NCBI RefSeq assembly: GCF_006345805.1
Contig: NC_043011.1
Location: 620,001 to 684,000 of the forward strand
Direction of reading: 5' to 3'
Source: Octopus sinensis
Taxonomy: Eukaryota
DNA: 64,000 nucleotides
In this document: positions 4,492-27,176 of the stretch, one piece after another
Layout of the letters: each line of letters starts with the position of its first letter
Numbering within the stretch: position 1 is the stretch's first letter
The notes under the pieces: generated by a model
Seen by the model: only the letters and a program-made list of their open reading frames with translations
Database searches by the model: none
Told to the model about the DNA's origin: nothing
Program-made: the position numbers and the translations under genes

Positions 4492-4503
4492 TATGTGTAT
4501 CTA

Positions 4504-6042
4504 CACAGAACCGCAAAAGAAACGTGATTTTTGTCAAACGTCATTTTTATATGGTAAATTCTGAAAATTATTTCAGGGATGTAAGTGTAAATATTCCAAG
4601 ACATGCTGGTTTATGGCTGAGACCCAAATTGCAGGTAACCTTTCAACTTACCTGAAACGAGACACCAAAACGAAGCTGCGTTGAATGCCGTGGGTTGCAG
4701 TCGCAAACAGTTGTCATGAAAACCGAAATGCACGTGCATCATGTGGAGGTCATAGGTATAAAAATCAACATGAACCGCGTTCCTGGCATTCTTAACTTGG
4801 ACGCATCAGGTATGACCCGATTGTCAGCAGCGCAGGGAGAACACGCTATCGGCCGATTGCAAGCAGAGCAGCATGCCCTAGTTGTTGCGAAAGCTTACAA
4901 TGTCCATGTCAGCATCATCTATCATCTGCAACAGCGATACAACAACAACAACAACAGCACTGCAGACCGTGCCCGCAGAGGGTGCTCCCGAGTGACCACG
5001 CCCAGGCAAGACCGCTTCATTCACCTGTAACACCTCCATAATCGCTTCAGACCGGCCAGCGTGACATCTCGCAAGACCATTAGCATTTTACAGCGACGAC
5101 GCGGCACGACTTCGACTGACCGCCAGCAACATGCGTTGCCGTCGACCTGCTCGAAGGTCTGTCCTCACCGCCCTCCACCGTCAGGCACGACTACAGCGGG
5201 CTACACTGCACCAACATTGGTGGCATCCACAATGGAGGTCGATAGTCTTCTCTGACGAGAGCCGCTACTGCGTATCCACCTCGGATGGCAGAGTGAGGGT
5301 GTGGCATAGGAGAGATGAACGCTACAGAGACACATGTGTCATGGAGAGAGACGCGTGGGGTAGCCAAAGCATCATGGCTTGGTGTACTATAGGCCTGAAT
5401 CAGAGAATTGGGCCCCATGTGTTCCAAAATGTTGGTGCAGGCAGAGGGAATGGCACCAGAGCGCAGGGTTACGTTGACCAGATTCTAAGACTTCACATAG
5501 TACCCTTATTCGCGCGTCACCATAGCAACGTGTTCTAGCAGGACAATGCTCTCTCCCACATGGTCAGAGTCATCATGGACTTCCTGCATCAGCGCAACAT
5601 CAGAATCATACCGTGCTCGACTCTTAACCCGGATTTGAACCCAATTGAACACCTGTGGGATGAAATCCAGAGACGGCTAAACCAGGTAGTACCAAGTACC
5701 AAGGCCGACAACTCGTGTGGAACTTGAGACAGCTTTCCTCAAGGTGTGGGCATTGGTGCCAATGGCTTTTGTGAACCGTCTCATGCACTCCATGTACTGA
5801 CGGTGTATGGTCGCTCTGAACGCCCTGGGAGGACATACATGGTTTTGAACACGTAACGCCCTACAATCTCGATGTGCTGGATCCGCCCACTAACAGAACA
5901 CATGACAATGACCCATAGACTGTGGTCAAAATGCATCCAAGAAATTGACTTTATCAGATTTATCAAAATTTATCTCTGACATAATGAAATTAAAACATAT
6001 TTCACAGTCACAGACGTCCCGCGTTTCTTTTGCGGTTCAGTG
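4504..6042 (+). mobile_element. Tc1-like transposon 2, full-length with degenerate transposase
   Basis: TIRs CACAGAACCGCAAAAGAAACG and reverse complement CACTGAACCGCAAAAGAAACG, TA flanks. Motifs: HTH (4810-5030), IVFSDESRY, (stop)QDNA, PDLNPIEHLWDE. Stops and frameshifts present. Confidence 0.92.
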
Positions 6043-6376
6043 TATATATCAGTTTCTTTTTGAAAGTGTCTTGAATGCGAATATAACTATAAAAAAAATA
6101 GCTCATAATGCATTAGGTTAAGGGAAAAATGTCTTGAACGAAGAAAAGATGGACAGTCACTCGCGAGACTCGAACTGCGTATTTACTGTAAACGGACGGT
6201 CGCAGTACCATTATATCAAAGCAACTCTCCGACTTTCTGCAGCCCAAATTCTAATCTTACCAGCTGGAAAAGAAGTTTGTTTATCATATTCCGCCCAAGA
6301 GGTTTTCTTTTAAACCAATGTAACAATAGGCAATAATTTATAGCAGCATTCACATACAAGTCTCTTCGTAAAAGAG

Positions 6377-6648
6377 GGATCTTTTCGGTTTGAACGGCAG
6401 TTTTTAACATAATTTCTAGGTAACTAAAAAATTTTAAACTTCGTATACTGGTAGAATGTGTTTATAAAGCATCTTTTTCTCTTGGCTTTATTGAGAAAAT
6501 TCTATAACCCTAACCCTAACCCTGACCCTAACTAACCCTAACCCTAAAACACATTGAAATGCAATAGATCGATACTTGGGTCATAATTATGGGTGAAAAT
6601 TTCATATGACACCGCTAGAAAAAACTGCCGTTCAAACCGAAAAGATCC
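6377..6648. mobile_element. Telomeric-repeat MITE, copy 1 (internally deleted)
   Basis: TIR GGATCTTTTCGGTTTGAACGGCAGTTTTT; exact 8-bp TSD TAAAAGAG (6369-6376, 6649-6656); internal (CCCTAA)n. Confidence 0.9.
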
Positions 6649-7073
6649 TAAAAGAGATTTATTTTTATATCTCTCGATGCTTCTGCAAAAGTTACAATAT
6701 ATATATATATATGTGTGTGTGTGTGTATGTGTGTGTGTGTATGTGTGTGTGTGTATGTGTTTGCTCGTGTGTGTGTATGTAACTGTGTGCATGCATATGT
6801 CTATGCATATAAGTAAATTTCCATTTCCGACGCTGCTACCACCCTCCCCAGCTTTTGGTTTCGAAGCATTAATTTAACAGTTATTACGTAGTAAGTAAGA
6901 CGCAAATTGGACCAGAGATGAAAACGACAAAGCAAAAACGCACCAGTATTTCCGCATATTCGATTTTTTAAAATCAATTTCTCATTTTCATCATTTACGT
7001 CTTTCCTATGGCCAAGTAAATTAATAAATAAATAAACTATTTGAAAAAAAAATCTGTTACTGGAAATCTGATA

Positions 7074-7730
7074 TTCTTACATTCTTCTGCATAGTGTATT
7101 CCTACATTCTTACATTCTTACATTCTTTTGCATAGTGTATTCTTACATTCTTACATTCTTACATTCTTCTGCATAGTGTATTCTTACATTCTTCTGCATA
7201 GTGTATTCTTACATTCTTACATTCTTACATTCTTCTGCATAGTGTATTCGTACATTCTTACATTCTTACATTCTTCTGCATAGTGTATTCTTACATTCTT
7301 ACATTCTTACATTCTTCTGCATAGTGTGTTCTTACATTCTTACATTCTTCTGCATAGTGTATTCTTACATTCTTACATTCTTCTGCATAGTGTAGTCTTA
7401 CATTCTTCTGCATAGTGTATTCTAACATTCTTCTGCATAGTGTATTTTTACATTCTTACATTTTTACATTCTTCTGCATAGTGTATTCTTACATTCTTAC
7501 ATTCTTCTGCATAGTGTATTCTTACATTCTTACATTCTTACATTCTGCATAGTGTAGTCTTACATTCTTCTGTATAGTGTATTCTAACATTCTTCTGCAT
7601 AGTGTATTTTTACATTCTTACATTTTTACATTCTTCTGCATAGTGTATTCTTACATTCTTACATTCTTACATTCTTCTGCATAGTGTATTCTTACATTCT
7701 TACTTTCTTACATTCTTCTGCATAGTGTAG
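7074..7730. repeat. Variable-unit minisatellite (TTCTTACA)1-3 + TTCTTCTGCATAGTGTA
   Basis: About 19 CATAGTGT cores separated by 1-3 copies of an 8-mer. Confidence 0.95.
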
Positions 7731-8048
7731 ATGTAACTGAGTGCGAATTCGCATGAGTGTGCATATAGCTGGTATGTAAGCTTTGCGCAGCTTTGGTATA
7801 AGCTTACTAGAAATCGCCGTACACATCCACGTACATACAATCGCTTGTATGTATCCAAGTTAAGCATTAAAATGGATAGAACGAATCTAGTCGTCTCTGA
7901 CAGCTGGGCTATGCATTTAAAAATTCTGGGACACACCCTCGCAATATGCAACAATTCCATGAAAATTCAGTCTTTGATCACAAATTCTGTCTTTGATTTG
8001 GAAATCGAGAAGCAAAATAACTCGAACGCTCTGACTTCAATGTCGTTT

Positions 8049-8200
8049 AAAGCGATTATGGAGGTGTTACAGGTGAATGAAGCGGTCTTGCCTGGGCGTG
8101 GTCACTCGGAAGCACCCTCTGCGGGCACGGTCTGCAGTGCTGTTGGTGTTGTTGTATCGCTGTTGCAGATGATAGATGATGCTGACATGGACATTGTAAG
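8049..8200 (-). mobile_element. Inverted ~150-bp fragment of Tc1 transposon 2
   Basis: Reverse complement is nearly identical to 4894-5047. Confidence 0.9.
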
Positions 8201-8654
8201 TCTCTCAATTTGTCACAAACTACGTCATTATTCAAAGATCACTATTATTATAAAAACGCAAAACAAAATGATAAAAAATAATTATTATTCAATGCTGCCA
8301 AACAATTGACCATGTATAAGAGAGATACAGTTTTCGTGTATTCTCACAAAAAAAAAAACAGTACTTTCGTCTTGTTATAGTGATAAATTAGATACGTTAC
8401 ACAAAAATTCTAGTGTTCAGAAAAGTCATCTTATTGATTCCACATTTTTTGTACACGTAATAAAAATGGGTTAGTAACTTTCGTCGGGAATAATTGTGAT
8501 AATCGTTTTGTTCAGCATTTTAGAAGTTTAAGTTTTCTAATCTCCAGAAACCTTGCGAGAAATGCTTACATTCGTTTACAAGATTATCTGCACGTCTTTA
8601 TAAAGGTGGGTGGTTGCTAGAAAGTATGTATGTTTGTATGTAGGTACGTATGGA

Positions 8655-8992
8655 GGAGACGCCCTTCGGTCATAAATGGCCATGGGGTTGCACCTAGAAA
8701 GTTACCTTCCGAGGCACAAGTCCAGGCAACGTTGTTTATGGAAGGCTAGCAGTCGCCCATGCATATCAGCCTCACCTCTCCACACCACTGATGTTATCCA
8801 AGGGAAAGGCAAAGGGGCCGATACAGCTTGCTACCAGTGACGTCGCAACTCATTTCTACAGCTGAGTTAACTGGAGCAATGTGAAATAAAGTGTCTTGCT
8901 CAAGAACACAACACGCAGCCCGGTCCGGGAACGAACTCACAACTTCACGATCGTAAGCTCGACGCTCTAATCACTGAGCCATGCACCTTCAC
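8655..8992 (-). mobile_element. tRNA-derived SINE (family D)
   Basis: Minus strand begins GTGAAGGTGCATGGCTCAGTGATTAGAGCG (A box) ... GAGTTCGTTCCCGG (B box), then a central TTGAGCAAGACACTT domain. Confidence 0.8.
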
Positions 8993-8995
8993 TAA

Positions 8996-9323
8996 ACGTA
9001 TACATACATACATACATACACGCATACATACATACATACATACATACATACATACATACACATACATACACACACATACATACATACATACATACATACA
9101 CATACACACACATACATACATACGTACACACATACATACATACACACATACATACATACATACATACACACATACATACATACATACATACATACATACA
9201 CACATACATACATGCATACATACACACACACATGCATACATACATACACACACATACATACATACATACATACACACATGCATACATACACACATAGATA
9301 CATACATACACACATACATACAC

Positions 9324-9356
<33 letters not shown>

Positions 9357-9740
9357 CATACATACATATATACATACATGCATGCATGCATACATACACA
9401 CATACAGACATACATACAAACATACATACGTACACGCATACACGCATACATACATACATACATACATACATACATACATACATACATACATACATACATA
9501 CATACATACGTACACGCATACATACATACATACATACATACATACATACATACATACATACACGCATACATACATACATACATACATACATACATACATA
9601 CATACATACATACATACACGCCTACATACATACGTACATACATACATACATAGATACATGCATACATACATACATACACACATACATACATACACGCATA
9701 CATATATACATGCGTGCTTGTGTGTGTGTGTGTGTGTTTT
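8996..9740. repeat. (TACA)n/(CA)n microsatellite, ~740 bp
   Basis: Direct inspection; it generates the spurious MYVC/HTYI ORFs. Confidence 0.98.
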
Positions 9741-10393
9741 AGTGAGAGGCAATTCTATATTGCTGTTTCGGTTTAGTATTCATGAAAACTTATCTTTACT
9801 CTTTGAGATGACAGAAAATACTTCTGTGTTAATTTGACGGGAATTTGTACAGCTTAGATTACTCGACAGTGTTCGATCCATCTGAGGATTGCAGAGGTTT
9901 CATGTAATTTTACTGCTGCAATCGCGCTTGTACAGCAGATGAAAGTCTTTAATGATAGTATTTATTCGTTTTATAATCTTGATATTTTTAAGAGAATATT
10001 TTCCTTCAAAACAGCTTTGGACTGCAATCGTAATAGGTTGTATTTTCTTGTGTTTTTTTTTCAATGTATATTTAAGTTCCAAGCATCAAGATGACTAAAA
10101 AACACATCTCTAAAGCTCTTCAGCCATATAATTCTTATTACGCCAAAAAATCGTCGACATTCTTGTAGATATTAACCAGTTTCGGTAGATGTTTCTAAAC
10201 AGGAAATGACTTCGTATGAATGTTATATTATCTTATCGTATCCACAGCTTACTACATGCTACAGGATATAAAGGAAGTAACAAATTCAATTATCATAAAA
10301 TTCAATTTACAAAGAGATTTAATATGACTATCACCAATTTTTAATATTGACTATAAAATTAAAACAAAAAATTAAAACAAAAAAGTTGAGTTT

Positions 10394-10898
10394 TATATAT
10401 ATAAAACTCAACTTGTGTGTCTATGTGTGTATCTGTGTGTGTGTGTCTGTGTGTTTAACTTCCCGGCACATCTCCTAGCCAACAAATCGTAGAACCACAA
10501 AAAATGGGTCACTTAAAGTTTAGGCGAATGAAAATTGAACTGCGCTATTTCTGTTCCGAAATTCATCTCGCAAGTGCAAAAATTGATAATGTGTTTGTTT
10601 AGGCCTTATCCCATGCATTTAATAGTGAACTTTACTCAGTCAGCTGTTTGACGTGAACTGTGTTCACCAGGCGTGCAAGCATGCGTAAATTGCATGAAAA
10701 ATAAAAATCAAGATATAAAAACGAATCGCTGTAAACATTGTAGAAATTCAGCAAAGAAATGAATTTTGGGGATGTAGCCTGGAGGGTTTTTTCGTATTAA
10801 TCGTTTGGACTTTGTGAACACATACCAATTGTTTTCATAACATTTTTAACGCTTTGAATTAAATGTGACCATTTTGCAAAGCCGGGCAATACTGCTAG
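10394..10898 (+). mobile_element. Non-autonomous Helitron-like element
   Basis: 5' TATATATATAAAACTC start followed by a (TG/TC) microsatellite; 3' GCAAAGCCGGGCAATACTG-CTAG followed by T. Confidence 0.6.
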
Positions 10899-10959
10899 TA
10901 AAATATAAAATTAAAGGCGAGAACATATATTAACCTCTACTTAGACGACTTTGAAACTT

Positions 10960-11495
10960 ATTTCCTTCTAAGTTAATACAATAGGTCTAAATCCGATCGG
11001 ACTAAACTGTCCATTTTTGCCTCACCTTCTGTGAACTTCAAGTCATCAATGAATAGTAGGTAGTTAAGTTTTCCCTCCCCATTTCCCAAATCGTACCCCA
11101 ACTTTGTCTTCTGCAATATTTCACTCAAGGAGATCATTCCCAGCACAAAGATCAATGGGGATACACTGTACTCCTGCAAGATTCCTCTCCTGATTTTCAC
11201 TTCTCCTCATACTTGATTTCTTGCTGTCAATTCAGTTCTGCAACATTTCATAGTTCCACACAAGGCATCTCATATTTTCTGCTATTCCATACATTTCTAT
11301 ACTTCTTGTTATCCAAGATGAGATATCAAATCGTATGCTTTACGATGATCAATCCAAACCATGCTCGCGTTTGTGCGATTTCTCTTGCAGTTTCTGATAA
11401 TTAGTTTATCAATTAATAGCTGATCTTTCTTTCCCTGGCTCCTCTTTCGGCACCCCTTCTGCTCAATAAGTAGAAGCCCTCTTTTTTCGCGACGG
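10960..11495 (-). pseudogene. R4/Dong-like reverse transcriptase fragment
   Basis: EQKGCRKRSQGKKDQLLIDK...WIDHRKAYD and IRRGILQEYSVSPLIF...LLFIDDLK, homologous to the 862-aa ORF at 17.4-20 kb. Abuts (AAC)n. Confidence 0.85.
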
Positions 11496-11584
11496 ACGAT
11501 GCAAGTACAAGTAACAACATTAGCAACATCAACAAAATCAGCAGCACCATCAACATCTACAACAATAGCAACGGTGACAACAGC

Positions 11585-11619
<35 letters not shown>

Positions 11620-11649
11620 CGAAAGAAGTGAGAAACAAACCGGTGCAAC

Positions 11650-13270
11650 AGTTTGGAATAACTTTAAACTTTCCTTCGCTGGAGTTACCAAGTCATCTCA
11701 TCAGAGAATACAATTCTCTGAAGAAGAACCTAAAAATGCCAGGCATCTAGTCAAGAGAGACGGGCTAGCTGTGAAGCTAAATGCCCCCTTTGAGACTATC
11801 CAGGATACGATATGTCGCACACTGACATACCTTACAATCAGATTAAAATCAAGGAGGGTAGAAAGAGCCACAGAGGCTCAAATGCAAAAAGCTTTAGGTT
11901 CCTTCTTGAATCTAAAGGAATATATACAGAGAGGAAGGGGCTATGAGATGGTGGAGGTCAGATTTCACACAGAGGAAGAAGCGAAATATCACTCTCTGAA
12001 TCGCCTCATAAGCGAGGGGTCAGAGACTGGCCAAAATCATCATTCACCAGGTGCCGCCAGAAATAGCCATTCCTTGGCTAATTGCCTCAGTAACGATAGG
12101 CATCGAGGAAAACTCGAAAATCCTCGAAGTCTATCAGACCAAAAAGGAGCACAGGTCCGGGATGACGTTAGAGGTCCTTATCCAAACGACCCAAAACAAT
12201 GTGGATCTCATCCCGGACTAGATCCTTCTTTCTGGAGGCAGCAAAATTCCAGTCAGGGTAGATGAAAGGAAAGCAAAGTGTCATATTTGATTTTCGACTA
12301 ATTATTTAAAAGTTTTTTGCCCTAGATTGAAGGAAAAAGAGAGGGGGCACCTCTCCTCCCTACACCAATAACGGCTACCAAAATTCGAGCGACAACAGCA
12401 GAAGCACCATAACCGTCAGCAGATTCAGCTGTGGAACCAGCGACACCAACCATACCGACACCGAGTTTTCCCAAACACTTCTCAGTGCCCGAAGATGTTC
12501 CACTTCCGGATGCGGAGCGGGTGGACATCACAAGTGGAGAGTCGGACCGCTATGAGGAGTGGAAGTTGAAAACAAAAAAAAAATGGAAAAGAGACAGAAA
12601 AAAAAATAAACATATGGACAAACAACAACAATCCCCATCCACACAAGAAGTGGAAAGACGAAAATCAAAACAACAAAAACAAATACACCCAAAACAAACA
12701 CTGCATTAACACCACCACCTCTAACACCTGAAACACAAGCCACCCCACAACCACAGGCACCATCACAACAACAGCAACAAACACAAATTAAAGAGACCAG
12801 CGTTACAAACTACATGGCAATAAGCACAAAAAACAATGAATTAATGAAGTACATAATAACACACACACAAACAAACATTACGCCAGAAGATTTTATTGCA
12901 CTCACAATCTCCCTACATGCGCACATACAAATCATTCAAACAATACAAAAACATATACACACTTAAAAACCCAATTCCCACAGGAAATCGGATATTTTCG
13001 AGGGAATATCACCAAGAGAATTCTTGGTGATTTAGTAATGAAAACACCCCAAACCGAAAAGATCCGACAGTTCTTTACAAAATAATTGGAATAAAAATTA
13101 CAAGAATAAATACAGGCAACATACCAGCAGATAGAAAAATATCTGTGACCAATTTGAAAGAACAAAACTTATATAGTCAGGGGGAAAAATATAGGACTGT
13201 CGAAGTGGGGTACATTTCAGAGGAGGAGGCCAAAAATTACTCAGCAGCCCACCCTATTGTGTAATGAACT
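11650..13270 (+). pseudogene. Degraded LINE ORF1-like region (two related segments)
   Basis: EYIQRGRGYEMVEVRFHTEEEAKYHS (~11910-12000) resembles LYSQGEKYRTVEVGYISEEEAKNYS (~13170-13245); a basic low-complexity linker (EWKLKTKKKWKRDRKK) lies between them. Confidence 0.4.
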
Positions 13271-13562
13271 CATCCTCATGCCCATTTCCCTTGGCTGGAG
13301 GGTGTTCAAAAGAAGAATGCTAGACATAGTACCAGAAATCAACATCTGCTGGTTGGTGGTCACGGTTCTCTTCAACATGGTTGTGATGCGTGTTCCTAAT
13401 GTACTCCTATCAGACTGGTAGTCTTGATGGTTATGTTTGGTTTCGTATATTTGTTCCCTAGGGTCACTTTGATGTCATGTGCTGCTCTCTAACGCAATGA
13501 TAATAATGATGATGATGATGATGATGATGATGATACTACTACTACTACTACTACTACTACTG

Positions 13563-13617
<55 letters not shown>

Positions 13618-14389
13618 GTTATTCTTTTATTGGCCAGAAGGACTAATAAATACAAACATACAATAACATTAAGGGACATACAATAACATTAAAAGTCAAA
13701 AACCGGACGATACAATAGGTTTTGACGTTCGTGTACACAGTAAATAACAAAAAAAAAATAAACAAGGGGCAGGCGCTTTTGAGGAAGTTCCGGTTTTATC
13801 TTCACTATTTCCGACAGTTCCAGTCCAGCATTAACAATCACCATCCTTATCACTGTCTTCATCATAGTCATAAGGCCTATTAATTACGAAAGTATTAGAA
13901 AAGTAGCTAAGAAAAGTGTTGGCTACTGCCCGTAAGGGTTTTGTGGAAAATCGTCGTAAACATTATTGTCGGAAACATCTTGGTTGAAAGACATTCTCTA
14001 AAAGAACAACTGGTTAGAAGAACAAATTAATCCTAAACATATTAGTCGAAGAAGAAGCGGAATATTCGCTCAAATTTCGATATTCTTCAAAGCGATAGAA
14101 AAAAAAATGTTTTATTAATATTTGAATTATCTGTCAAAATCTCTAAGTCTTAAAATTTAGAAATTATTAGCATAAACATAAGAAGTTATGGTTGATATAT
14201 GATTTTTAAAAATCTGACGCTGACTGAAGTTGTTTGCAAAAACCATGAAATATAAACATTTATGACACCAAATCAATAGCATTTTTAAAGAAAGATGCAA
14301 TTGACGCAATCGACATCAACTGCTTAAATATCGATCCGCTACTTAGTATCCATTGATTGTTCTGGTCGTTTGTCTATGCTAGAAGTATT

Positions 14390-14812
14390 GGATCTTTTCG
14401 GTTTGAACGGCAGTTTTTTCTAGCGGTGTCATATGAAATTGTCACCCATAATTACAACCCTAGTATCGATCTATTGCATTTCTATCTGTTTTAGGGTTAG
14501 TGTTAGTTAGGGTTAGGGGTGGGAGGAAGGGTATCTTTTTTTCTTCACAAATGTAAATAAACCCAATCTGTTTCTTAAACGAGGGACATATTCATACGGC
14601 ACAGAATGTTTTTTTTTTACCTCAATGGACGTCATTGAAATTGCAGAAATTGAAGAAAAACAACAACAAATATCTTACTAACTATAGAATTTTCTCAATA
14701 AAGCCAAGAGAAAAAGGTGTTTTATAAACACATTCTACCAGTATACGAAGTTTAAAATTTTTTAGTTACCTAGAAATTATGTTAAAAACTGCCGTTCAAA
14801 CCGAAAGGATCC
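14390..14812. mobile_element. Telomeric-repeat MITE, copy 2
   Basis: Both TIRs present; exact TSD GAAGTATT; TTAGGG tract on the plus strand. Confidence 0.93.
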
Positions 14813-15043
14813 GAAGTATTTCTTACAAGCCCAACGGGTGTCGGATTTGTTGAGCACAGGACAAAATAGTCTGTTGCATTGGATAACGTCCCTATAGCTT
14901 CTGAGATGAAGTACCACTATGGCTATTTTTGCTTGTCGTTCATAGCACGATAAAATAAGCACCGGTCAAATTAATAGTCATATCTAATCGACTAAATTCC
15001 GCTCATAAGAATGCAGTAATAATATACATATGTTTGAAATCTT

Positions 15044-15455
15044 GGATCTTTTCGGTTTGAACGGCAGTTTTTAAAAATAATTTCCACGTAACAAAACACT
15101 TTTAAACTTCGTATACTGGCAGAATATGTTTATAAAACATCTTTTTCTCTTGGCATTCTTGAGAAAATTCTGTCGTTTGTAAGATATTTGTTGTTTTTTT
15201 CTTCAATTTCTGCAATTTCAACCAATCAAATTCTGTGCCGTATGAATATGTCCCTCGTTTAAGAAACAGATTGGGTTTATTTACATTTGTGAAGAAAACA
15301 ATGATACCCTTCCCCCACCTCTAACCCTAACCCTAACCCTAACCCTAAGCCTAAAAGAGATTGAAATGCAATAGATCGATACTAGTGTCATAATTATGGG
15401 TGACAATTTCATATGACACCGCTAGAAAAAACTGCCGTTCAAACCGAAAAGATCC
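15044..15455. mobile_element. Telomeric-repeat MITE, copy 3 (opposite orientation to copy 2)
   Basis: Both TIRs; TSD GAAATCTT/GAAATCGT (7 of 8); CCCTAA tract on the plus strand. Confidence 0.93.
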
Positions 15456-15862
15456 GAAATCGTTATTGTTGCTATTATCACTAAAGAAGTTAGAGTGATG
15501 CTATATATGCGCACCCACACATTCACATAAAGTAACTGAAAATATATTCCATTCAAAACCAATTTCTTCATATTTAAAGTAATAAGTTAAAAAATTAGTC
15601 GAGATTGACATTTTTTTCTTTTTGAAAGTCCTTTCCAAAAATAACGTGAAAATAATTGAAAATATATTTCATTACAAAATAACTTTTTATCGCTTAAAAA
15701 GGGGAGAAAATTAGACGATGTTATGTTTCAATGAATTACTATGTTGTTTATAAGTATTTCAACGAATATCTTTCTATATATTTGATGTCGACTAATATGT
15801 TTCTGTTCAATCTATCTTGAATGTAATTTGTCACTCGACCGATCTGTCTCACAATGAATTTG

Positions 15863-16537
15863 GGATCTTTTTCCCTTTCAACGGCAGATCGAGAAATAAA
15901 GTTTTTGTAACTATAACACTTTCAAACTTCGGAAACTGGTAGAATGTGTCATATAAAACATCTTTTACTCTTAGTGTTGTTGAGAAAAGTTTATATTTTC
16001 AAAGTTATTTCGTGTTAAAGTTGTCGTATTTCGGTAATTTCAACCAATGTATTTCGACCAGTGTATTCAGCTGAATAAAATTATTGCCTTTGTTTGTCAA
16101 CAACAACTATCGGCGGTGTATATTTCGTCTGTCGCTGTTATTTATGACATCGTTCGTACGTTTGTACTGGTTTTAGCTTTAGGGTTTTAGGGTTAGGGTT
16201 AGGGTTTTAGGGTTGGGGTTAGGGTTTTAGGGTTAGGGTTAGGTTAGTAGAAATACACGAACGATTGTGGTGATGCTATGAAGTAAACATGCTTCAGATA
16301 CACTCGTTTATTCATACAAACAGTAACAAACGAAATATACACCGCCAGAAGTTGTTGACAAACAACAGCAGCAAATTTATTAAGCTGAATACACGTCATT
16401 GATTGGATGAAATTGCCGAAATACGACAACTTTAACAGGAAATAACTTTGAAAATGTAAAATTTCTCAACAACACTAAGAGTAAAAGATGTTTTATATGA
16501 CACATTCTACCAGTTTCCGAAGTTTGAAAGTGTTATA
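15863..16537. mobile_element. Foldback element related to the telomeric MITE, right terminus lost
   Basis: Left end GGATCTTTTTCCCTTTCAACGGCAG; imperfect inverted arms ~15912-16146 and ~16313-16537; TTAGGG/TTTTAGGG tract at 16171-16247 between the arms. Confidence 0.8.
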
Positions 16538-16544
16538 CACCGGC

Positions 16545-17176
16545 TAAATCTATCATGGCAAATAATATATTCATTTGAAGTTAGCGTAGAGCAACCAGAA
16601 ACGAGATGGTCAATTACTTCTCTGGTTACACCACAAAAGCGGAAGAATGCTTGCTTAGTAGTTTCTGGTGAGCAGATTTCGATCCCGAGCTGCTATAATG
16701 AAGCTCTCAGTTTATGATTTAAGTTCAGATACAGCCAGTTTTGATGGGTCATATTTGTATATACATCCGGATTGCTTGCCCTTGTAGGGTATTATCCATA
16801 CAATACTGTACTTTTCCATGTACTTTGCAGCACCGAGATTGCGTTTGATTATAGCCTTTAACTGTTGTGCTATCACGGCGGGTTCTTCTGCTTCATCGAG
16901 TTGTGTCCCAATTTAGCTGATCCTCAATTTCTATACATACTTCTTTGCTTCTTCTGATATTGAGTGCATTTTTAGGAACGTTCATACTCACAGCAAGTTT
17001 AAGCATCCAGTTGCTGGTGTAATTTGGATAGGAGTCTATCTCTATGGCTGCTATTTTTTAAGAGACAGTTGCAGTTGTATTATTTCACGTCCGCCATCAT
17101 TTCGTGGGCCGTATAATGTATGTATATCTGCCTTTAAGTGCGGTATGCGGTGCACTGTGAGGAGCTTACGTATTTT
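16545..17176 (-). pseudogene. Degenerate R4/Dong-like fragment (RT thumb to CCHC region)
   Basis: TKIRKLLTVHRIPHLKADIHTLYGPRNDGGREIIQL aligns with TRKIMTGSRMHHPKSDIERLYIQRIEGGRGLIQL of the large ORF. Abuts the same (TAA)n tract. Confidence 0.75.
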
Positions 17177-17226
17177 TGTTGTTGCTGTTATTATTATTAT
17201 TATTGTTATTGTTATTATTATTATTA

Positions 17227-17266
<40 letters not shown>

Positions 17267-17391
17267 CATTATTATTATTATTATTATTCAGTAGTTTTAT
17301 TTTTATTTTTATAGCGTGCTTTCACTTCACTACCGAGCGCAGCTCTGTGTGCCTTGGGTATGTGCTGTGATTTGTTGTGATGCTCTGATGG

Positions 17392-19980
17392 TTATTGTTT
17401 GGAAAGTGTTCTGCGTAGGATGTGTGCAGTGCCTAGTAGTGCAATTTTCTGTATGTTATATGTGTTTGTAAGTCCTGGTGTTTTTGTTATGTATTTGTCT
17501 GAATATTTTTTTATCATGCCTAATGCACCTACTATGATAGGAATTGTTTCTGTTTTCAGATTCCACATTCTAGTTACCTCTATTTCCAGGTCTTTGTATT
17601 TTGAGAGTTTCTCCATTTCTTTTAGAGACACGTTGTCATCTGCCGGTACTGATACATCAATTAGAAAGCATTTTTTTTCTTCATGGTCTCTGACAACTAT
17701 ATCTGGTCTGTTGGCCTTAAATTCTCTATCTGTGTGTATCGGCATATCCCAGAGTATGGTTGTTTTCTCGTTTTCTGTGACCTTTTCTGGTGTGTGCCTA
17801 TACCATCTTTTTTCTGTTGTTATTCCATAATGTTGGCATAGCTTCCAATGTATGTAGGTTCCAACTCTGTCATGTCTGTGAATATATTCCTTCTTAGCCA
17901 GGACTGGGCAGCTAGAGATAATATGATTTATTGTTTCTTGTCCATCTCCACATATTCTGCAGTTACTTGTAATATTTCTTTTCATTACATGTTTTTGGTA
18001 ATTTCTGGTGGGGAGGCTTTGGTCTTGTGCTGCAATTAAAAATCCCTCTGTTTCTGCTTTGAGTCCTGAGCTTCTCAACCATTGCTGGGATTTTTCTTTG
18101 TCTATTTCTTTTGCGTTTAGTTTAGTGCAGTATTTACCATGAAGGGGCTTTTCTTGCCATCGTTTTATCATGGTTCGTTGCTGTTCTATTTTTAGTTTGG
18201 ATTTCATTTGTTTTATAGCTTTTGTTGTTTCTTCATCTTCTTTTTCTTCATGTTTATTAGGTGGTATGATTTCTTGTTTGTATTTGTCAGCTTCCTTAAA
18301 TACTGAGAACAGTTTTTTGTTTTGCTCGTGTTTTGCCGCTATCTGGATCAGTTTTCCTTCCTTCTGAAGTAGATATTTTTGCAGTCCTATGGTGGTTATT
18401 TTATAGTAGTTTTCCAGTTGTATAAGGCCTCTACCACCTTCTATACGTTGTATATATAGTCTTTCTATGTCAGATTTTGGGTGATGCATCCTAGATCCTG
18501 TCATTATTTTTCTTGTTTTCCTGTCTATTTTGGTCAGTTCATTTCGTGTCCAGTTAAGGATATTGTAGCTGTAACTTATAACTGGGACAGCTAAAGTGTT
18601 GATACCTATTATCTTGTTTTTAGCATTGAGCTCTGTGTTTAGTATTGATCTAACTCGTCTATAATATTCTTTTTTTATTTTCTCTTTCATTTGTGTGTGT
18701 TGTGTCTTATCTAGTTCATGGATTCCTAAGTATTTGTAAGTTTGGCTTTGGTCTAATTCTTTTATTTCATTTGCTTCATCTAGTGTGATGTTGTTACTCT
18801 TAACTAGTTTTCCTCTTTTCATGGTTACTTTGGCGCATTTTTCTAATCCAAATTTCATATCTATTTCTTTGGTAAATCCATGAACTGTCTTTAATAGTGT
18901 TTCCAGCTGTTTGTCATTTGCAGCGTATAGTTTTAGGTCATCCATATATAAAAGGTGGCTGATCGTTTTGCCGTAACATTTATATCCGCATCCAGTTCTA
19001 TTTAGCATATCAGATAGAGGTGACAGTGCCAAGCAGAAAAGGAGTGGAGAGAGCGTATCTCCCTGGAATATTCCTCTTCTAATGGGGATGTCTTTGGTTT
19101 TCATGAGTCCCTCTTTTGTTTGGAGGTGTAGGTCTGTTTGCCATTTATTCATAGAGTGCTCTATGAATTTTATGATTGTTGGTGCTACTTTGTTAATGGC
19201 TAGTGTTTCGAGGATCCATGTGTGGGGGATGCTATCAAACGCCTTTTTGTAGTCAATCCAGGCCATACTGAGGCCTTTCTTCTTTCTGTGGCTGTCTTCA
19301 GTTATGGCTTTATTAATCATTAGTTGATCTTTACAGCCATATGAGCCTTTGCGGCATCCTTTCTGCTCTTCTGGGAACAGTTTGTTTTCGTCCAGGTGCT
19401 TGTTCAGCCTTTGTGATATCACTGCAGTAAATGCCTTGAACATAGTAGGGAGGCAGGTTATTGGTCTGTAGTTTTCTGGTTTTTCTGTTTCATTTGATTT
19501 GGGAATTAAGATGGTTTTCCCCTTCGTGAGCCATTCAGGCATTGTCTCTGGCTCTGCTAGTACGTTGTTAAAATTTTCAGCCAGCTTTTTGTGCATTCCT
19601 GTTAGATATTTCAACCAGAAGTTGGGGATCTTGTCATGCCCAGGTGCCTTCCAGTTGCTTAGTCTTTGCAGTGCCTGGGTGACCTCTTCAGTTGTTATGG
19701 GGGTCCAAGTTTGTTCAGATGCCGAGTTTGTTATTTTGATACTCCTTTTTTTTGGTGGTTCGTTCGCCGACCATATTTCTCCCCAGAATTCTTCCAATTC
19801 TTCTGCCGTTGGTGCTGCAGTGACTTCTATTTTATTTTTGCCCAGTTCTTGGTAGAACTTTTTGGGGTTGGAGTTGAACTTTTTGTTTTCTTCAAAGAAG
19901 CGTTGGCGTTTCTTGTACCGGCGGATCCTTTGTGCTTTGGCAAGGATATCTTGCTTCAGCTTTTCTTTTATTTCAGGCAA
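17392..19980 (-). CDS. Reverse transcriptase + CCHC zinc knuckle + restriction-like endonuclease (R4/Dong ORF, main part)
   Basis: 862 open codons with NYRPITCLPT, WIDYKKAFDS, GIFQGDTLSPLLF, LLYMDDLKL, CRICGDGQETINHIISSC and RPDIVVRD...LIDVSVP...KY (PD-(D/E)XK). Confidence 0.93.
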   Translation of the reverse strand: MPEIKEKLKQDILAKAQRIRRYKKRQRFFEENKKFNSNPKKFYQELGKNKIEVTAAPTAEELEEFWGEIWSANEPPKKRSIKITNSASEQTWTPITTEEVTQALQRLSNWKAPGHDKIPNFWLKYLTGMHKKLAENFNNVLAEPETMPEWLTKGKTILIPKSNETEKPENYRPITCLPTMFKAFTAVISQRLNKHLDENKLFPEEQKGCRKGSYGCKDQLMINKAITEDSHRKKKGLSMAWIDYKKAFDSIPHTWILETLAINKVAPTIIKFIEHSMNKWQTDLHLQTKEGLMKTKDIPIRRGIFQGDTLSPLLFCLALSPLSDMLNRTGCGYKCYGKTISHLLYMDDLKLYAANDKQLETLLKTVHGFTKEIDMKFGLEKCAKVTMKRGKLVKSNNITLDEANEIKELDQSQTYKYLGIHELDKTQHTQMKEKIKKEYYRRVRSILNTELNAKNKIIGINTLAVPVISYSYNILNWTRNELTKIDRKTRKIMTGSRMHHPKSDIERLYIQRIEGGRGLIQLENYYKITTIGLQKYLLQKEGKLIQIAAKHEQNKKLFSVFKEADKYKQEIIPPNKHEEKEDEETTKAIKQMKSKLKIEQQRTMIKRWQEKPLHGKYCTKLNAKEIDKEKSQQWLRSSGLKAETEGFLIAAQDQSLPTRNYQKHVMKRNITSNCRICGDGQETINHIISSCPVLAKKEYIHRHDRVGTYIHWKLCQHYGITTEKRWYRHTPEKVTENEKTTILWDMPIHTDREFKANRPDIVVRDHEEKKCFLIDVSVPADDNVSLKEMEKLSKYKDLEIEVTRMWNLKTETIPIIVGALGMIKKYSDKYITKTPGLTNTYNIQKIALLGTAHILRRTLSKQ

Positions 19981-20242
19981 ATCTTTTCTGTGATGTTATA
20001 TTTGCGGAGTATTTTTGTTCTCTTTTTGTTGCTCAGTAGCGTTGATTCTTTGCTGATTTCATTAAGAATCGACAGGTCTTTTCTATTTTTTTTATTTTGC
20101 TTTGGATGTTATTTATCCACAGGGTTTGTTTGGGTGGTGGTACTCCTGTTTGGGCGGGTTTGGGTGAGTATCCAGCTTCTTTTGTGGCTGCAGTGGCTGC
20201 TGCGTATATTAGGTTATTTAGCTCAGTGATATCACTTTTTTT

Positions 20243-21031
20243 TTATTCAGTGGCTATCAGTTCAGTGACGGCTAGGTTTATGCTGTTTATAATAGGTGTT
20301 GTTATTTTGTTTATTTTGATTCTTGGGAGGTATGGTCGGTGGTCCATTGTGAGCTCTGTGGTTTTCAGTTCTTTGATTATTTTATTTTTTATATTATCAT
20401 AATCATTAGGCTCCCCTTCGTTGTTTACATCGTGTTTGTTGGGAATGTTGCGTTTGTCTTCGTGTTTTACAGTTTCAGTGTTTATATTATTGGGCATTGT
20501 TGTGCGGCTTCTACCTACATTTTCATGGTGTATGTTTTCTTTTAGGTGTTCTATTTCTATTTCTGATATTTTTTTTGTGTTGAGAATGTATCTTCGTACG
20601 TTAGCTAATTTATTAGGGTTCATTGCTGTATCCAAGTCTAAATCTCTATTATTTTCCTTCCATATTTTATATGTATGTGTTGTTGTATTTTCATTTTTTG
20701 TATAGAGTACTGCTGTGAAGTATGCGTGTAAGATAGAAATGTATTCCTCACGTGTCCATTTACGTCTTTTGGGTTTTATTTGCGGGACATGAGGTACAAC
20801 GTCCGGCCCATTATTTTGACGGTCGTCATTTTCGTAGGGTACCGGTCCGTTTATTTCTGTTGTCACATTATTTCGCACGTGTAGTTTTTCGTGCATTTTT
20901 TGTTGTAGGTTTAATGTACGTACCGCTCGATTGTTATTCTTGGGTTGAATAGTATCGGTGGCATTTAATTTCTTCGTAGTTCCTTTGTACATGGTGTTTG
21001 GGGTCGGAGATGATCGTGATGTTTCACGCAT
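20243..21031 (-). CDS. N-terminal part of the same R4/Dong ORF
   Basis: First ATG at 21031; KRRKWTREEYISILHAYF motif; reading continues in frame past the TAA at 20243-20245 (KKSDITELNNLIYAAAT...WINNIQSKIKK). Confidence 0.85.
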   Translation of the reverse strand: MRETSRSSPTPNTMYKGTTKKLNATDTIQPKNNNRAVRTLNLQQKMHEKLHVRNNVTTEINGPVPYENDDRQNNGPDVVPHVPQIKPKRRKWTREEYISILHAYFTAVLYTKNENTTTHTYKIWKENNRDLDLDTAMNPNKLANVRRYILNTKKISEIEIEHLKENIHHENVGRSRTTMPNNINTETVKHEDKRNIPNKHDVNNEGEPNDYDNIKNKIIKELKTTELTMDHRPYLPRIKINKITTPIINSINLAVTELIATE

Positions 21032-21257
21032 GTTTACATGTGTTGCGTTAGAGGTGGAGATGATATCGAGTCAAAATACATCATTTCGTTTCGAAAATAG
21101 TAATAAATTTCAATTTGTATTACTTACTCGGATACAGTCCAATTCTTTGTTAGTAAAACTTTGGCTCCATAGGATGTCCTTGTTTTCGATGTTTGTGGAT
21201 AGGTTTCGGAGCTCTGAATTTTCCTTCTTACATCTTAAAAGTCCCCCGGTGTTCTCC

Positions 21258-21308
<51 letters not shown>

Positions 21309-21493
21309 CATTATTATTATTATTATTAATAATAATAATAATAATAAAAATAATACCTGTGAATTTGCGCGTGTAACCTGGGAATGAAAACAATGAGCTT
21401 CTCTGCCCTAGGTGTACGGAAAATACTCGACGAGAAACGGAAGAAAATTTGAAGAAAGGACACAACAACAACAACAATAATAATAATAATAAT

Positions 21494-21529
<36 letters not shown>

Positions 21530-22413
21530 CTCGGACAAAATGCCTTGTGGTATTTGGTCATGGTTTTTTTACATTCTAAGTTAAAATCCCGCCAAGGTCA
21601 TCTTTGTCATTCTACTTTCAGAAAATGATGAAATGAACTAGCCGTCAAAAACTGCAGTCGGTTTATTCAACTTACACCGTTCCCTCCAAATTTCTGGTCA
21701 CGTGCCTACATTAGAAACCATTATTTTAAAAAATCCTTTTTAACACTTCTGTCTTGAAATTGTCAAAGGACACTAATAGATTAGAAGTAGTTTCACTGAA
21801 AACTTTTAATGTGGAAGACAAAAAATGGATTATATAATGTCTAACATAGTTTTATGTGTAATGGTTTCACTGTTTTTTGTGAATAAGGAAAATGTTATGT
21901 GAATGTAGAAAAAATCAACCAAACTAAATGGAATATCAATGAGAATAAAATAAAAAGTCGAAAGAAGATTTACAGAGAGAAGTTATTAGTTACAGAGAAA
22001 TACATGATACACATGCATCATCAGATTCTTTGGATAGTTTTTCTGATTGGTAGAAAGTGCGATATATGAGTATAAGAAAAGAGATGAGAAACTAATGCAT
22101 GTCCTTGGATTAAGATTAAGAAATGAACGAAACTCACGCAAATCTATAGGGGTTTATATTAATTTCGAACTTAGCCATACGATCTAAAATTTAGGATATT
22201 TCTCCTGTGGCGACAGGATGAACATGTGCAATGCTGATGTTTTTGCGGTGGATGCCGTAAAGCAGTTTAGTGTTGTACGACACCGTTAGCTGTAATTTTA
22301 TTTTATGCCAATGAATAACTGAAGAAATTAATATATTTTTGACACACGCTCAATTTTGTAAATCGTGGTGGGCACGTAGATTTTTTCCAATCCGTCATGC
22401 TATCACAATATTG

Positions 22414-22822
22414 GGATCTTTTCGGTTTGAACGGCAGTTTTTTCTAGCGGTGTCATATGAAATTGTCACCCATAATTATGACCCTAGTATCGATCTATTG
22501 CATTTCAATCTGTTTTAGGGTTAGGGGTGGGGGGAAGGGTATCTTTTTTCTTCACAAATGTAAATAAACCCAATCTGTTTCTTAAATGAGGGACATATTC
22601 ATACGGCACAGAATGTTTTTTTACCTTAATGGACGTCATTGATTGGTTGAAATTGCAGAAATTGAAAAAAAACCAACAAATATCTTATAAACTATAGAAT
22701 TTTCTCAATAAAGCCAAGAGTAAAAGGTGTTTTATAAACACATTCTACCACTTTACGAAGTTTAAAATGTTTTAGTTACCTAGAAATTATGCTAAAAACT
22801 GCCGTTCAAACCGAAGAGATCC
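22414..22822. mobile_element. Telomeric-repeat MITE, copy 4
   Basis: Both TIRs; TSD CAATATTG/CAGTATTG. Confidence 0.93.
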
Positions 22823-22949
22823 CAGTATTGCGATATTTCTGCGTATTAAGACATTTTCCAAATTCGGCGTCGTTAGAACGCCAAACACGTTAAGTTAGAT
22901 ATAAAGACTGTCTTTTGGTATTAAATACTGCTTTTGTCGATGATAATTA

Positions 22950-23690
22950 TTTTTAATAAGCTTGCAGGTTGTTTGCGACATCGTGCTTGATGAGTCACTG
23001 TAATTCTATATATGGTTGGCAGTGAAATTTGGCTGGTATGTGGCGAGCAGGTACCTGTCGCTGAGAGACGTAGTATGTCTAAACTACGTGATCTGGCAGT
23101 TCCGGCGCTCATAGCAGATCTTTTCAGTTTGAACGGCAGTTTTTAACATAATTTCTAGGTACCTAAAAAATTTTAAACTTCGTATACTGGTAGAATGTGT
23201 TTATAAAACATCTTTTTCTCTTGGCTTTATTGAGAAAATTCTATAGTTTGTAAGATATTTGTTGTTTTTTTCATTCAATTTCTGCAATTTCAACCAATCA
23301 GTGACGTCTGTTGAGTTAAAAAGCATTCTGTGCCGTATGAATATGTCCCTCGTTTAAGAAACAGATTGGGTTTATTTACATTTGTGAAGAAAAAAAGATA
23401 CCCTTCCCCCACCCCTAACCCTAACCCTAACCCTAACTAACCCTAACCCTAAAATAGATTGAAATGCAATAGATCGATTCTAGGGTCATAATTATGAGTG
23501 GCAATTTCATATGACACTGCTAGAAAAAACTGCCGGTCAAACCGAAAAGATCCCTCATAGCAGACGATTCCTGATTCTCATCTGCTAATAATATGTATCT
23601 GCATGAGAGGAACTCTCAAGACAAATACCGCAGTATTCGGTGTTGTAACAAAACATTCCAGTTAAATTGGATATAATGTTAACTATTTAC
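22950..23690 (+). pseudogene. Old CRE-like 3' fragment interrupted by MITE copy 5
   Basis: AERRSMSKLRDLA resembles the CRE AE..K..KY.DL motif; 23595-23690 resembles the sequence downstream of the CRE fragment at 28790-28880. Confidence 0.4.
23116..23553. mobile_element. Telomeric-repeat MITE, copy 5
   Basis: Both TIRs; exact TSD CTCATAGC; CCCTAA tract on the plus strand. Confidence 0.93.
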
Positions 23691-24114
23691 GATTTGTGCG
23701 ACTATGGAAATCGATTTACCATGTTCATTTGTACGTATTACACACGGTGTTAAACTTATATAAGTTTTCAACGATTTTCATCATTAGAAAATGCTTTTAT
23801 TATGCAGAAATCAAACACTTAATTCATGAAGATGTGACTGAATTTAGTCATTTTCCTTGGAGAATATACGTATAAGTTTTCGAAAAGGAAATAAAAAAAA
23901 AAGATTCACTAAAAAGTTGCACCTATCGATCTATTCGTGCAGAAGGTCGTCATAGATGTTTATATATCAATTTTTTTTTCATATTGAAGATCAGCCATCA
24001 AAGGTTCATATGTAGACAACCTCTTCATTTGTGACGAAACTGAGTAATGTCTTACTTAGTGTTATCGATCTATTCAAGCGAGTGCTAGAATGGTTATGCG
24101 ATTAAGAATTTCAT

Positions 24115-24528
24115 GGATCTTTTCGGTTTGAACGGCAGTTTTTTCTAGCGGTGTCATATGAAATTGTCACCCATAATTATGACCCTAGTATCGATCTATT
24201 GCATTTCAATCTGTTTTAGGGTTAGGGGTGGGGGAAGGGTATCTTTTTTTCTTCACAAATGTAAATAAACCCAATCTGTTTCTTAAACGAGGGACATATT
24301 CATACGGCACAGAATGTTTTTTTTTACCTCAATAGACGACATTGATTGGTTGAAATTGCAGAAATTGAAGAAAAAAAAACAACAAATATCTTACAGACTA
24401 TAGAATTTTCTCAATAAAGCCAAGAGAAAAAGATGTTTTATAAACACATTCTACCAGTATACGAAGTTTAACATTTTTTAGTTACCTAGAAATTATGTTA
24501 AAAACTGCCGTTCAAACCGAAAAGATCC
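24115..24528. mobile_element. Telomeric-repeat MITE, copy 6
   Basis: Both TIRs; exact TSD AATTTCAT. Confidence 0.93.
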
Positions 24529-25311
24529 AATTTCATTTAAATATAATCTTGTGTGTATCAACGAGCCATGTTTCATTACGACAAATGCACACTGCCTCTC
24601 TTACACATTAATATATTTATTTATTTTATGTCGCAGTTGGTTTCAATTTCCTATAATTTGTTTAATTCACTACTGACAGCGAAAGGGACAAGGAAGTGTC
24701 ATTAACTCGATACAGAACCAATATTTTTAACGCACCGATTTTTTAACGCACCAATATTTTTAACGCACCGATTTTTCGATTTTTGCCGCCGCTATTGCTA
24801 CAATGATAAAAGGTAAAAATTATGGGCTACACAAATCTCCAACACTTTTCTAAACATACATACGCGCGCAAACACAAACACGTAACCATACACTCAAATT
24901 CATGTATGCATATATAGAAGAGTGTTGGCGTTAGTGTACCATTATATTTGTTTATTTTTCCTTTTTTCATAGTAGTTCCTCCTCCCCCTTCGTCTTTCAC
25001 CATCTTTCACCCTTTTAGTTTTATACCCTTGAACATCCGTGGACTACTCACTCGACAGCATTATTACTGAAATGAAGCCCCACTTGCTAGATCAGCAAGT
25101 TAGAGAAAATTTATTATTTTGGCTATTACTGCTCGTTATCTCATTTTAACCAAATCCAGTAACTTGCTTTCCCCACTGCAGCTTGGATATCACTCATGTT
25201 AGTATATTTTTTTTTACGTTGAGGTAGGCCTTGCAACAATAACCATCGCTTCGTATTGCTTCCAAGGAATCCTCTACATTTAACTTCGATTGGATAATAT
25301 TCTACTAAATC

Positions 25312-25520
25312 AGCGAGCTGCTAGAATCGTTAGCACACCGGGTGAAATGCTTAGCAGAATTTCATCTGTCTTCACGCTTTGAGTTCAAATTTCGCCGAGG
25401 TTGACTTTGCCTTTCATCCTTTTGGGGTTGATAAAATAAGTACCAGTTGAGTACTGGGGTCGATGTAATCGACTATCCCCCTCCGAAAATGCTGGCCTTG
25501 TGCCAAAATTTGAAATCAAT
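25312..25520 (+). mobile_element. tRNA-derived SINE family B (tail type 1)
   Basis: GCGAGCTG..AGAA head, GAGTTCAAAT B box, CCTTTCATCCTTT.GGGGT.GATAAA central domain. Confidence 0.85.
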
Positions 25521-26011: not shown

Positions 26012-26243
26012 ATTTCTTTATTACCCACAAGGGGCTAAACATAGAGGGGACAAACAAGGACAGACATAGGTATTAAGTCGATTACATCGACCCCAGTGCG
26101 TAACTGCTACTTAATTTATCGACCCCGAAAGGATGAAAGGTAAAGTCGACCTCGGCGGAATTTGAACTCGTAACGTAACGGCAGACGAAATACTGCTAAG
26201 CATTTCGCCCGACGTGCTAACGTTTCTGCTAGCTCGCCGCCTT
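26012..26243 (-). mobile_element. SINE family B (tail type 2) with TSD
   Basis: Direct repeat TATCACTCTTTGATACCT at 25994-26011 and 26247-26264. Confidence 0.9.
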
Positions 26244-26960: not shown

Positions 26961-27176
26961 AAGGTGGCAAACTGGCAGAAACGTTAGCACACCAGGCGAA
27001 ATGCTTAGCAGTATTTCGACTGTCTTTACGTTCTGAGTTCAAATTTCGCCGATGTTGACTTTGCTTTTCATCCTTTCGGGTTGGATAAACTAAGTACCAG
27101 TTGCGTACTGGAGGCGATCTAATCGACTGGCCCCTCCCTCAAAATTTCGGGCCTTGTGCCTAGAGTAGAAAAGAAT
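26961..27176 (+). mobile_element. SINE family B (tail type 1)
   Basis: Same head and central domain; tail CCCTCCCTCAAAATTTCGGGCCTTGTGCCTAGAGTAGAAAAG. Confidence 0.88.

Follow-up and report, generated by a model that had tools for sequence, protein, structure and literature searches.

Six copies of a short inverted-repeat element in the window

The window analyzed here is a 64,000-nucleotide (nt) stretch of the Octopus sinensis genome (contig NC_043011.1 of assembly GCF_006345805.1, positions 620,001 to 684,000), numbered from its first letter. A preliminary description made from its letters had reported six copies of a miniature inverted-repeat transposable element (MITE) that carries the telomeric repeat TTAGGG. 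All six were present at the reported starts, and their boundaries and coordinates are collected in Table 1 (c1 to c6). The copies are 272 to 438 bp long, typically ~410 bp, and end in 29-bp terminal inverted repeats (TIRs) with the sequence GGATCTTTTCGGTTTGAACGGCAGTTTTT. When the first 24 nt of the first terminus (GGATCTTTTCGGTTTGAACGGCAG) were used as a probe, 12 matches with at most two mismatches were found in the window, compared to 0 expected by chance, and these 12 termini form six inward-facing pairs. Eleven of them begin with GGATC, as had been described, and one begins with AGATC. Each copy is also flanked by its own 8-bp target site duplication (TSD). Read from the flanks, the six TSDs are all different; four are exact and two match at 7 of 8 positions, which agrees with the earlier reading. 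The imperfect ones belong to c3 and c4, which at 4.6% each from the consensus are more diverged than the other copies.

The six copies align with a mean column identity of 86% and differ from their consensus by 0.8 to 4.6%, c6 being the nearest to it (0.8%). The changes are almost all private to one copy, and the copy tree is star-like. The flanks and the spacers between copies consist of unique sequence; the copies therefore do not lie inside a shared target repeat. The distinct TSDs, unique flanks, and star-like tree mean that these are independent insertions, as the preliminary description had proposed. No open reading frame (ORF) of at least 40 amino acids (aa) is present within c6, the longest being 36 aa, and an exact look-up of two ORFs inside c6 returned nothing on record. 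No further main-family copy was detected by a profile search in the remaining 45.8 kb of the window. With TIRs, TSDs of fixed length that differ from copy to copy, small size, no coding capacity, and multiple copies, the elements are a MITE family, i.e., nonautonomous cut-and-paste elements. Six copies of the main family and two related subfamilies, e7 and a 142-bp relative (both described below), were recovered. If the transposable element (TE) rate of Octopus vulgaris applies (a Jukes-Cantor [JC] value of 0.09 for about 25 million years [My]; PMC13282606), the copies would be, very roughly, ~2 to 13 My old, a range in which the six-copy consensus underestimates divergence.

Table 1. Coordinates of the telomere-repeat-bearing elements, their relatives, and other repeats (window positions unless a locus is named)
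Feature	Position	Strand	Description
Copy c1	6377..6648	-	272 bp; tract 6508-6549; TSD TAAAAGAG, exact, at 6369-6376 and 6649-6656
Copy c2	14390..14812	+	423 bp; tract and G-rich block 14489-14531, with TTAG interruption; TSD GAAGTATT, exact
Copy c3	15044..15455	-	412 bp; tract and G-rich block 15307-15356; TSD GAAATCTT / GAAATCGT, 7/8
Copy c4	22414..22822	+	409 bp; 2-unit tract and G-rich block 22513-22539; TSD CAATATTG / CAGTATTG, 7/8
Copy c5	23116..23553	-	438 bp; tract and G-rich block 23401-23454, with TTAG interruption; TSD CTCATAGC, exact
Copy c6	24115..24528	+	414 bp; 2-unit tract and G-rich block 24214-24239; TSD AATTTCAT, exact
Element e7	15863..16537	+	Divergent relative; nhmmer E values 1e-27 and 1e-25; left TIR GGATCTTTTTCCCTTTCAACGGCAG
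142-bp relative	O. sinensis L003 41714-41855; O. vulgaris L004 44265-44406		Orthologous positions
Conserved block	24346-24375 (example, main family); 16394-16425 and 16030-16050 (e7)		Alignment columns ~255-285
Minisatellite and (ATAC)n array	7073-7765, 9000-9711		33/41-bp unit, ~17 units; 0.7-kb array
Non-LTR retrotransposon	17188-21355	-	Nearly intact; (TAA)n/(TAT)n arrays at 17188-17312 and 21258-21355
SINE-like repeat	25305-25474	+	~170 bp
SINE-like repeat	26076-26245	-	~170 bp
SINE-like repeat	26961-27128	+	~170 bp
SINE-like repeat	41087-41246		~170 bp
Tc1-like remnants and degraded mariner-like piece	3462-4494, 4695-5538, 1538-2300		HTH_Tnp_Tc3_2 and DDE_3 fragments in the Tc1-like remnants
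Penelope-like ORF	34164-35384		Weak GIY-YIG match; C-rich array 35096-35320
Foldback/MITE-like inverted repeats	32745-33247, 47179-47532, 39463-39788, 57043-58357, 59369-60371		Unrelated to the telomere-carrying family

The TTAGGG tract appears to be inherited cargo

Element position 100 is where the TTAGGG tract starts in all six copies, with a length of 2 to 7 units. A G-rich block, GGGGTGGGGGAAGGG, adjoins it in five copies, the exception being c1, which lost the block through an internal deletion. Some tract forms recur. For instance, c1, c2, and c5 (the longest tract of the main family) have the same internal imperfection, a TTAG interruption (…TTAGGGTTAG-TTAGGG…), and c4 and c6 have the same short form of two units; the five units of c3 are uninterrupted. 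The fixed position and these shared forms mean that each variant of the tract came down from a source copy and that some slippage was added. To judge from this pattern, the tract is inherited cargo and was not added locally, locus by locus. It really is the host telomere repeat, since TTAGGG is the only experimentally determined telomere motif of cephalopods, found in Amphioctopus (PMC13218726).

All 10 tracts of at least two TTAGGG units in the window fall inside the seven elements (c1 to c6 and e7), as do 7 of its 11 G-quadruplex (G4) motifs; the only G4-type motifs outside the family lie in a C-rich low-complexity array described below. At least four G-runs are kept in every copy, including the copies with two units. 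For comparison, ~165 kb of nonidentical octopus DNA was sampled, from a single region that three species represent with ~42 kb, 54 kb, and 69 kb. No tract of two or more TTAGGG units was found in these main comparison loci, and G4 motifs number at most one per locus. Within this sample, the family is the sole source of interstitial TTAGGG tracts. The earlier statements that every copy holds a TTAGGG tract of variable length, that a G-rich segment lies beside it in five, and that a transposon is spreading interstitial telomere-like tracts were therefore borne out within this sample, the tract being part of the element itself.

The deletion in c1 removed ~165 bp, and its start coincides exactly with the 3′ end of the tract. 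Breakage or slippage at the interstitial telomeric sequence (ITS) and G4 block would fit such a position. The sequence at the junction, beside the c1 tract, reads …GGGTTAGGG/TTATAGAA…, with the slash at the join.

A diverged hairpin relative

A seventh element, e7, sits between two main-family copies and was absent from the preliminary list. It is built as two inverted arms of ~290 bp (15912-16168 and 16246-16537) on either side of a telomere-like tract. The arms are 100% complementary at the outside and 75 to 80% near the center, and the right arm lacks its last ~48 bp, TIR included. The tract (77 nt, 16171-16247) consists of 3.2 copies of the 20-nt unit TTAGGGTTTTAGGGTTAGGG and is the longest telomere-like tract found. 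As single-stranded DNA, e7 is predicted to fold into an almost perfect 675-nt hairpin with the array as its loop (−209 kcal/mol, z = −37). In addition to the TIR, e7 and the right half of the main family have ~210 bp of homologous subterminal sequence, and in e7 this segment is present on both sides, as inverted arms.

The tracts of e7 and the main family have the start GTTTTAGGGTT in common, the e7 tract beginning GTTTTAG…. A shared start speaks for inheritance of the tract from a common ancestor and against its acquisition on two occasions. In the main family the left-specific part meets the right-homologous part at the tract, and in e7 the tract is at the exact center.

Both diverged subfamilies also have a conserved block in common, ACGTCATTGATTGG(T/A)TGAAATTGC(A/C)GAAAT (Table 1). 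It looks like a cyclic AMP response element (CRE) half-site plus a CCAAT box, and it may serve as a promoter-like motif or as a subterminal binding site for the transposase.

Relatives in other octopus genomes

The comparison loci of O. sinensis, O. vulgaris, and O. bimaculoides were reached through a Tc1-like protein and a neighboring S28-peptidase gene. They contain a single family member, a 142-bp element with the TIR GGATCTTTTCCTTTTGAACGGCAC and the exact 8-bp TSD GTAATATA, which is found at the orthologous site in both O. sinensis and O. vulgaris. Made up of the TIR and the right subterminal region, it has no TTAGGG tract. The orthologous site of O. bimaculoides reads TTTTAAGAA-GTAATATA-AATATTA, with one GTAATATA and no element, i.e., a clean empty site. 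An empty site in one species and a TSD-flanked element in the other two mean that the family transposes and makes 8-bp duplications; this evidence concerns the 142-bp relative and not the copies in the window. The family was active after the bimaculoides lineage split from that of O. vulgaris and O. sinensis. The empty-site region of O. bimaculoides (L011, ~9040-9840) itself appears to be partly tandem duplicated (~230 bp), so that the target sequence occurs there twice.

Searches beyond these loci gave little. The 22-mer core of the TIR had no match in metagenome or viral contigs, and a literature search with the TIR strings returned only unrelated primers. Five metagenome matches to a degenerate TIR pattern were rejected as chance, since they had no homology beyond the pattern. 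One megabase-scale ENA contig had no repeats in common with the window. Protein searches with the reverse transcriptase (RT) of the long interspersed nuclear element (LINE) and the Tc1 ORFs of the window gave best matches of 55 to 78% identity. At the DNA level, the Tc1 and short interspersed nuclear element (SINE) repeats of the window are 84 to 98% identical to those of the O. sinensis and O. vulgaris loci and at most 92% identical to those of O. bimaculoides.

Superfamily of the elements

Merlin transposons are diagnosed by TIRs of 24 to 462 bp, a conserved terminal 5′-GG, and TSDs of 8 or 9 bp (Feschotte 2004, as summarized in PMC8101967). The octopus elements share these features: the 29-bp TIR has a terminal GG in 11 of 12 cases, and the TSD is 8 bp in all seven scorable cases. 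Suitable enzymes are plentiful in the genus. With 191 Merlin transposase sequences, O. bimaculoides is conspicuous (PMC8101967), and two Merlin families were recently active in O. vulgaris (PMC13282606). Known Merlin elements differ in having a DDE_Tnp_IS1595 transposase, whereas none with these TIRs was found for the octopus element. Because no transposase partner was found, the superfamily was judged from the end features alone, and on these a Merlin assignment seems evenly poised or slightly favored.

Duplications of 8 bp are not unique to Merlin; hAT and P elements and atypical Mutator-like elements (MULEs) come into question, as do Novosib and Zisupton, which are further 8-bp-TSD superfamilies. 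The termini of hAT elements follow 5′-YARNG (CAG or TAG and so on) and their targets nTnnnnAn or nnnTAnnn, P-element termini are CATG, and Mutator elements and MULEs usually have TSDs of 9 to 11 bp and often long TIRs. The octopus elements have the 8-bp TSD of hAT, but their termini are GGATC, which also differs from the P-element end. T at position 2 with A at position 7 occurs in none of the seven TSDs on either strand, and a central TA occurs in one. On these termini and target patterns, hAT was set aside. The TSD length is consistently 8 bp and long inverted arms occur only in e7, so that of the two superfamilies first suggested, Merlin or MULE, the former stood on its end features and the latter did not. 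What speaks for another superfamily is that hAT and Mutator families were also recently active in O. vulgaris (PMC13282606) and that none of the searches identified a transposase partner. Since a terminal GG with an 8- to 9-bp TSD is the published diagnosis of Merlin (PMC8101967), an origin outside that superfamily is possible but rather doubtful.

Clustering of the elements

The seven elements are crowded into one part of the window, and four of the six gaps between them are shorter than 600 bp. When seven elements were placed at random in 64 kb, a span of 18.15 kb or less was obtained in 0.25% of simulations and at least four gaps of <600 bp in 0.07%; with six elements only, the same figures were 0.8% and 0.4%. 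Tested within the window, the clustering that had been pointed out thus exceeds chance. The 18-kb span was correct as first given, but the element-free part is 45.8 kb, the 39 kb originally stated being the downstream portion only. The GC content is slightly lower in the cluster region (35.7% versus 38.3%). Between the first copy and the second cluster lie a minisatellite and an (ATAC)n array (Table 1).

Two explanations had been offered for this arrangement, local hopping and a regional insertion preference. Some other cut-and-paste transposons favor nearby sites. If the octopus family behaved in this way, a resident copy would have jumped nearby repeatedly, with the donor site restored by repair; the four short gaps (P of about 0.0007) and the 18-kb span (P of about 0.0025) would then follow, as would be in keeping with those other transposons. 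However, adjacent copies are not sisters: c2 and c3 differ by 7.2%, c4 and c5 by 9.0%, and c5 and c6 by 4.8%, and neighbors overall are 4.8 to 9.3% apart and have almost no derived variants in common. A good example of this is c6, the copy nearest the consensus, none of whose three changes is found in any other copy. Furthermore, the cluster mixes two subfamilies, the main family and e7. Since neighbors are not sisters and the subfamilies are mixed, repeated independent arrivals fit better than hopping from copy to neighbor, and local hopping is unlikely. A regional preference of insertion or retention would fit the cluster better.

Other features of the window

The window also holds a nearly intact retrotransposon without long terminal repeats (non-LTR), with a (TAA)n/(TAT)n array at either flank. 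It encodes an 862-aa ORF (RVT_1, zf-RVT) with a C-terminal CCHC and an RPD…D restriction-like endonuclease motif, and an upstream ORF of 262 aa. It looks like a Dong/R4-type element targeting TAA microsatellites; among the LINE groups of O. vulgaris, Dong-R4 is reported to be the most active (PMC13282606). The ~170-bp SINE-like repeat occurs at four places and also in the O. sinensis locus, with 85 to 92% identity. The Tc1-like remnants are 86 to 92% identical in DNA to a gene-annotated O. sinensis copy, and a Tc1-like ORF of the window matches an Octopus sinensis protein. The Penelope-like ORF runs into the C-rich array. Several other foldback or MITE-like inverted repeats are present; in one of them, arms of 235 nt with 99% complementarity enclose a 33-nt spacer. 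No Rfam family match was obtained and no host exons were identified in the window, the ORFs recognized by eye or by Pfam being TE derived.

A MITE family that probably carries a telomere tract passively

Taken together, these results are in all likelihood explained by a MITE family of the Octopus genome that passively carries a telomere tract. The 29-bp inverted ends would be recognized by a transposase acting in trans, which is probably a Merlin enzyme, and each insertion duplicates 8 bp of the target. The (TTAGGG)n tract and GGGGTGGGGGAAGGG belong to the source sequence and are copied passively at every insertion, so that every new copy amounts to a short telomere-like tract at an interstitial site and also to a canonical G-quadruplex motif. 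The differences in tract length stem in part from distinct source lineages, one with the long form and its TTAG interruption and the other with the short two-unit form, and the remaining variation is attributed to slippage after insertion. The tract is probably old in the lineage, because the diverged hairpin sister family has a centered tract with the same start, and it most probably had a single origin, in a progenitor. A regional preference of insertion or retention would explain why the seven elements are clustered.

How the tract first entered the element can be suggested from its position. It may be filler added by telomerase at the junction of an internally deleted element, by analogy with the telomerase-mediated insertion of ITSs at breaks (PMC7215372). 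The boundary of two parts in the main family and the center of e7 are where a filler at an internal-deletion junction would be expected, which is suggestive.

Several points weigh against the interpretation as a whole. First, the clustering test was made post hoc on one window. Second, the sole relative in ~165 kb of other octopus DNA is without the tract, whose prevalence is known from the window alone. Third, neither the window nor the ~165 kb of octopus loci yielded an autonomous element with these TIRs, and other superfamilies with 8-bp TSDs may be responsible. Finally, the telomerase-filler origin is conjectural.

The tract might instead be a functional module. The telomere-like and G-rich block could bind a TRF/Myb-type telomere protein or the element's transposase, or form a G-quadruplex, and could in this way promote transposition, targeting, or retention, hence the local clustering. 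In line with this, the tract has been kept in two subfamilies in which the shared arms have diverged far beyond the differences among copies and the sequences beside the tract are not homologous. It also forms the exact loop of a predicted hairpin with a 290-bp stem in e7, every copy keeps at least four G-runs, and the clustering is above chance. However, the 142-bp relative transposed with a normal TSD and has no tract, c1 lost the G-rich block, and microsatellites often hitchhike in MITEs without a function (examples in PMC6947457). A functional module is therefore improbable. A stronger form would have the block selected to recruit a TRF/Myb-like protein or to form a G-quadruplex or hairpin loop, which would bias landing or retention into tight clusters and make the family the chief source of interstitial telomere-protein sites, fragile sites, or neotelomere seeds throughout the octopus chromosomes; this we regard as slightly more improbable still. 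Least credible of all is that the tracts are telomerase additions at independent breaks that happen to coincide with the repeat, such as are documented in mammals (PMC7215372), or that the copies are a segmental duplication: the former was ruled out by the shared interruptions and by the same element position in all copies (position 100 of six elements bounded by TIRs and TSDs), and the latter by the unique flanks and different TSDs.

Relation to known systems and significance

Passive carriage of a repeat by a MITE has precedents. MITEs with hitchhiking microsatellites include the lepidopteran (GTCY)n elements, those of Xenopus with internal tandem repeats, and the satellite-related MITE-like elements of bivalves (PMC6947457). 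The octopus family resembles these in being a small noncoding element with TIRs and TSDs and a consensus internal repeat that is spread by transposition and varies in length later. It differs in that the repeat is the host telomere hexamer with a G-rich block, i.e., an ITS plus a G4 motif, and in that the tract is common to two diverged subfamilies, one of them a full-length hairpin.

Likewise, short ITSs are known to be inserted during the repair of double-strand breaks (PMC7215372; reviewed in PMC6410037). These are also short, nonterminal (TTAGGG)n tracts, of 2 to 25 units, but they arise one locus at a time by telomerase and are without TIRs or TSDs, whereas the octopus tract is inside a mobile element. 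Mobile elements physically linked to telomeric repeats are known too: the Penelope-like Athena elements and Terminons bear terminal telomeric repeats (PMC6431247), and Helitrons of Paramecium cap chromosomes (PMC13085455). Those elements are large, lie at or are targeted to chromosome ends, and have the repeats at the element end. The octopus MITE, in contrast, is 0.4 kb long and of the cut-and-paste type, with an internal tract at interstitial sites. Microsatellite-spreading MITEs and telomere-linked mobile elements are thus already known, and what is unusual here is the telomeric cargo. A curated repeat annotation of O. vulgaris lists 65 MITE families and makes no mention of telomeric content (PMC13282606).

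The family provides natural material for the study of ITS instability, with tracts of 2 to 7 units at dated insertions and one deletion that starts at the tract. If it proves abundant genome-wide, it would call for caution where telomere motifs are used for scaffolding or for telomere calling in cephalopod assemblies; TTAGGG was used as the motif in a cuttlefish assembly (PMC13218726). The spread of interstitial telomeric repeats by transposons has been raised in reviews only as a possibility (PMC6410037). Given such abundance, the family would be a concrete, sequence-level case of it and would explain where the interstitial TTAGGG and G4 motifs of these octopus genomes come from.

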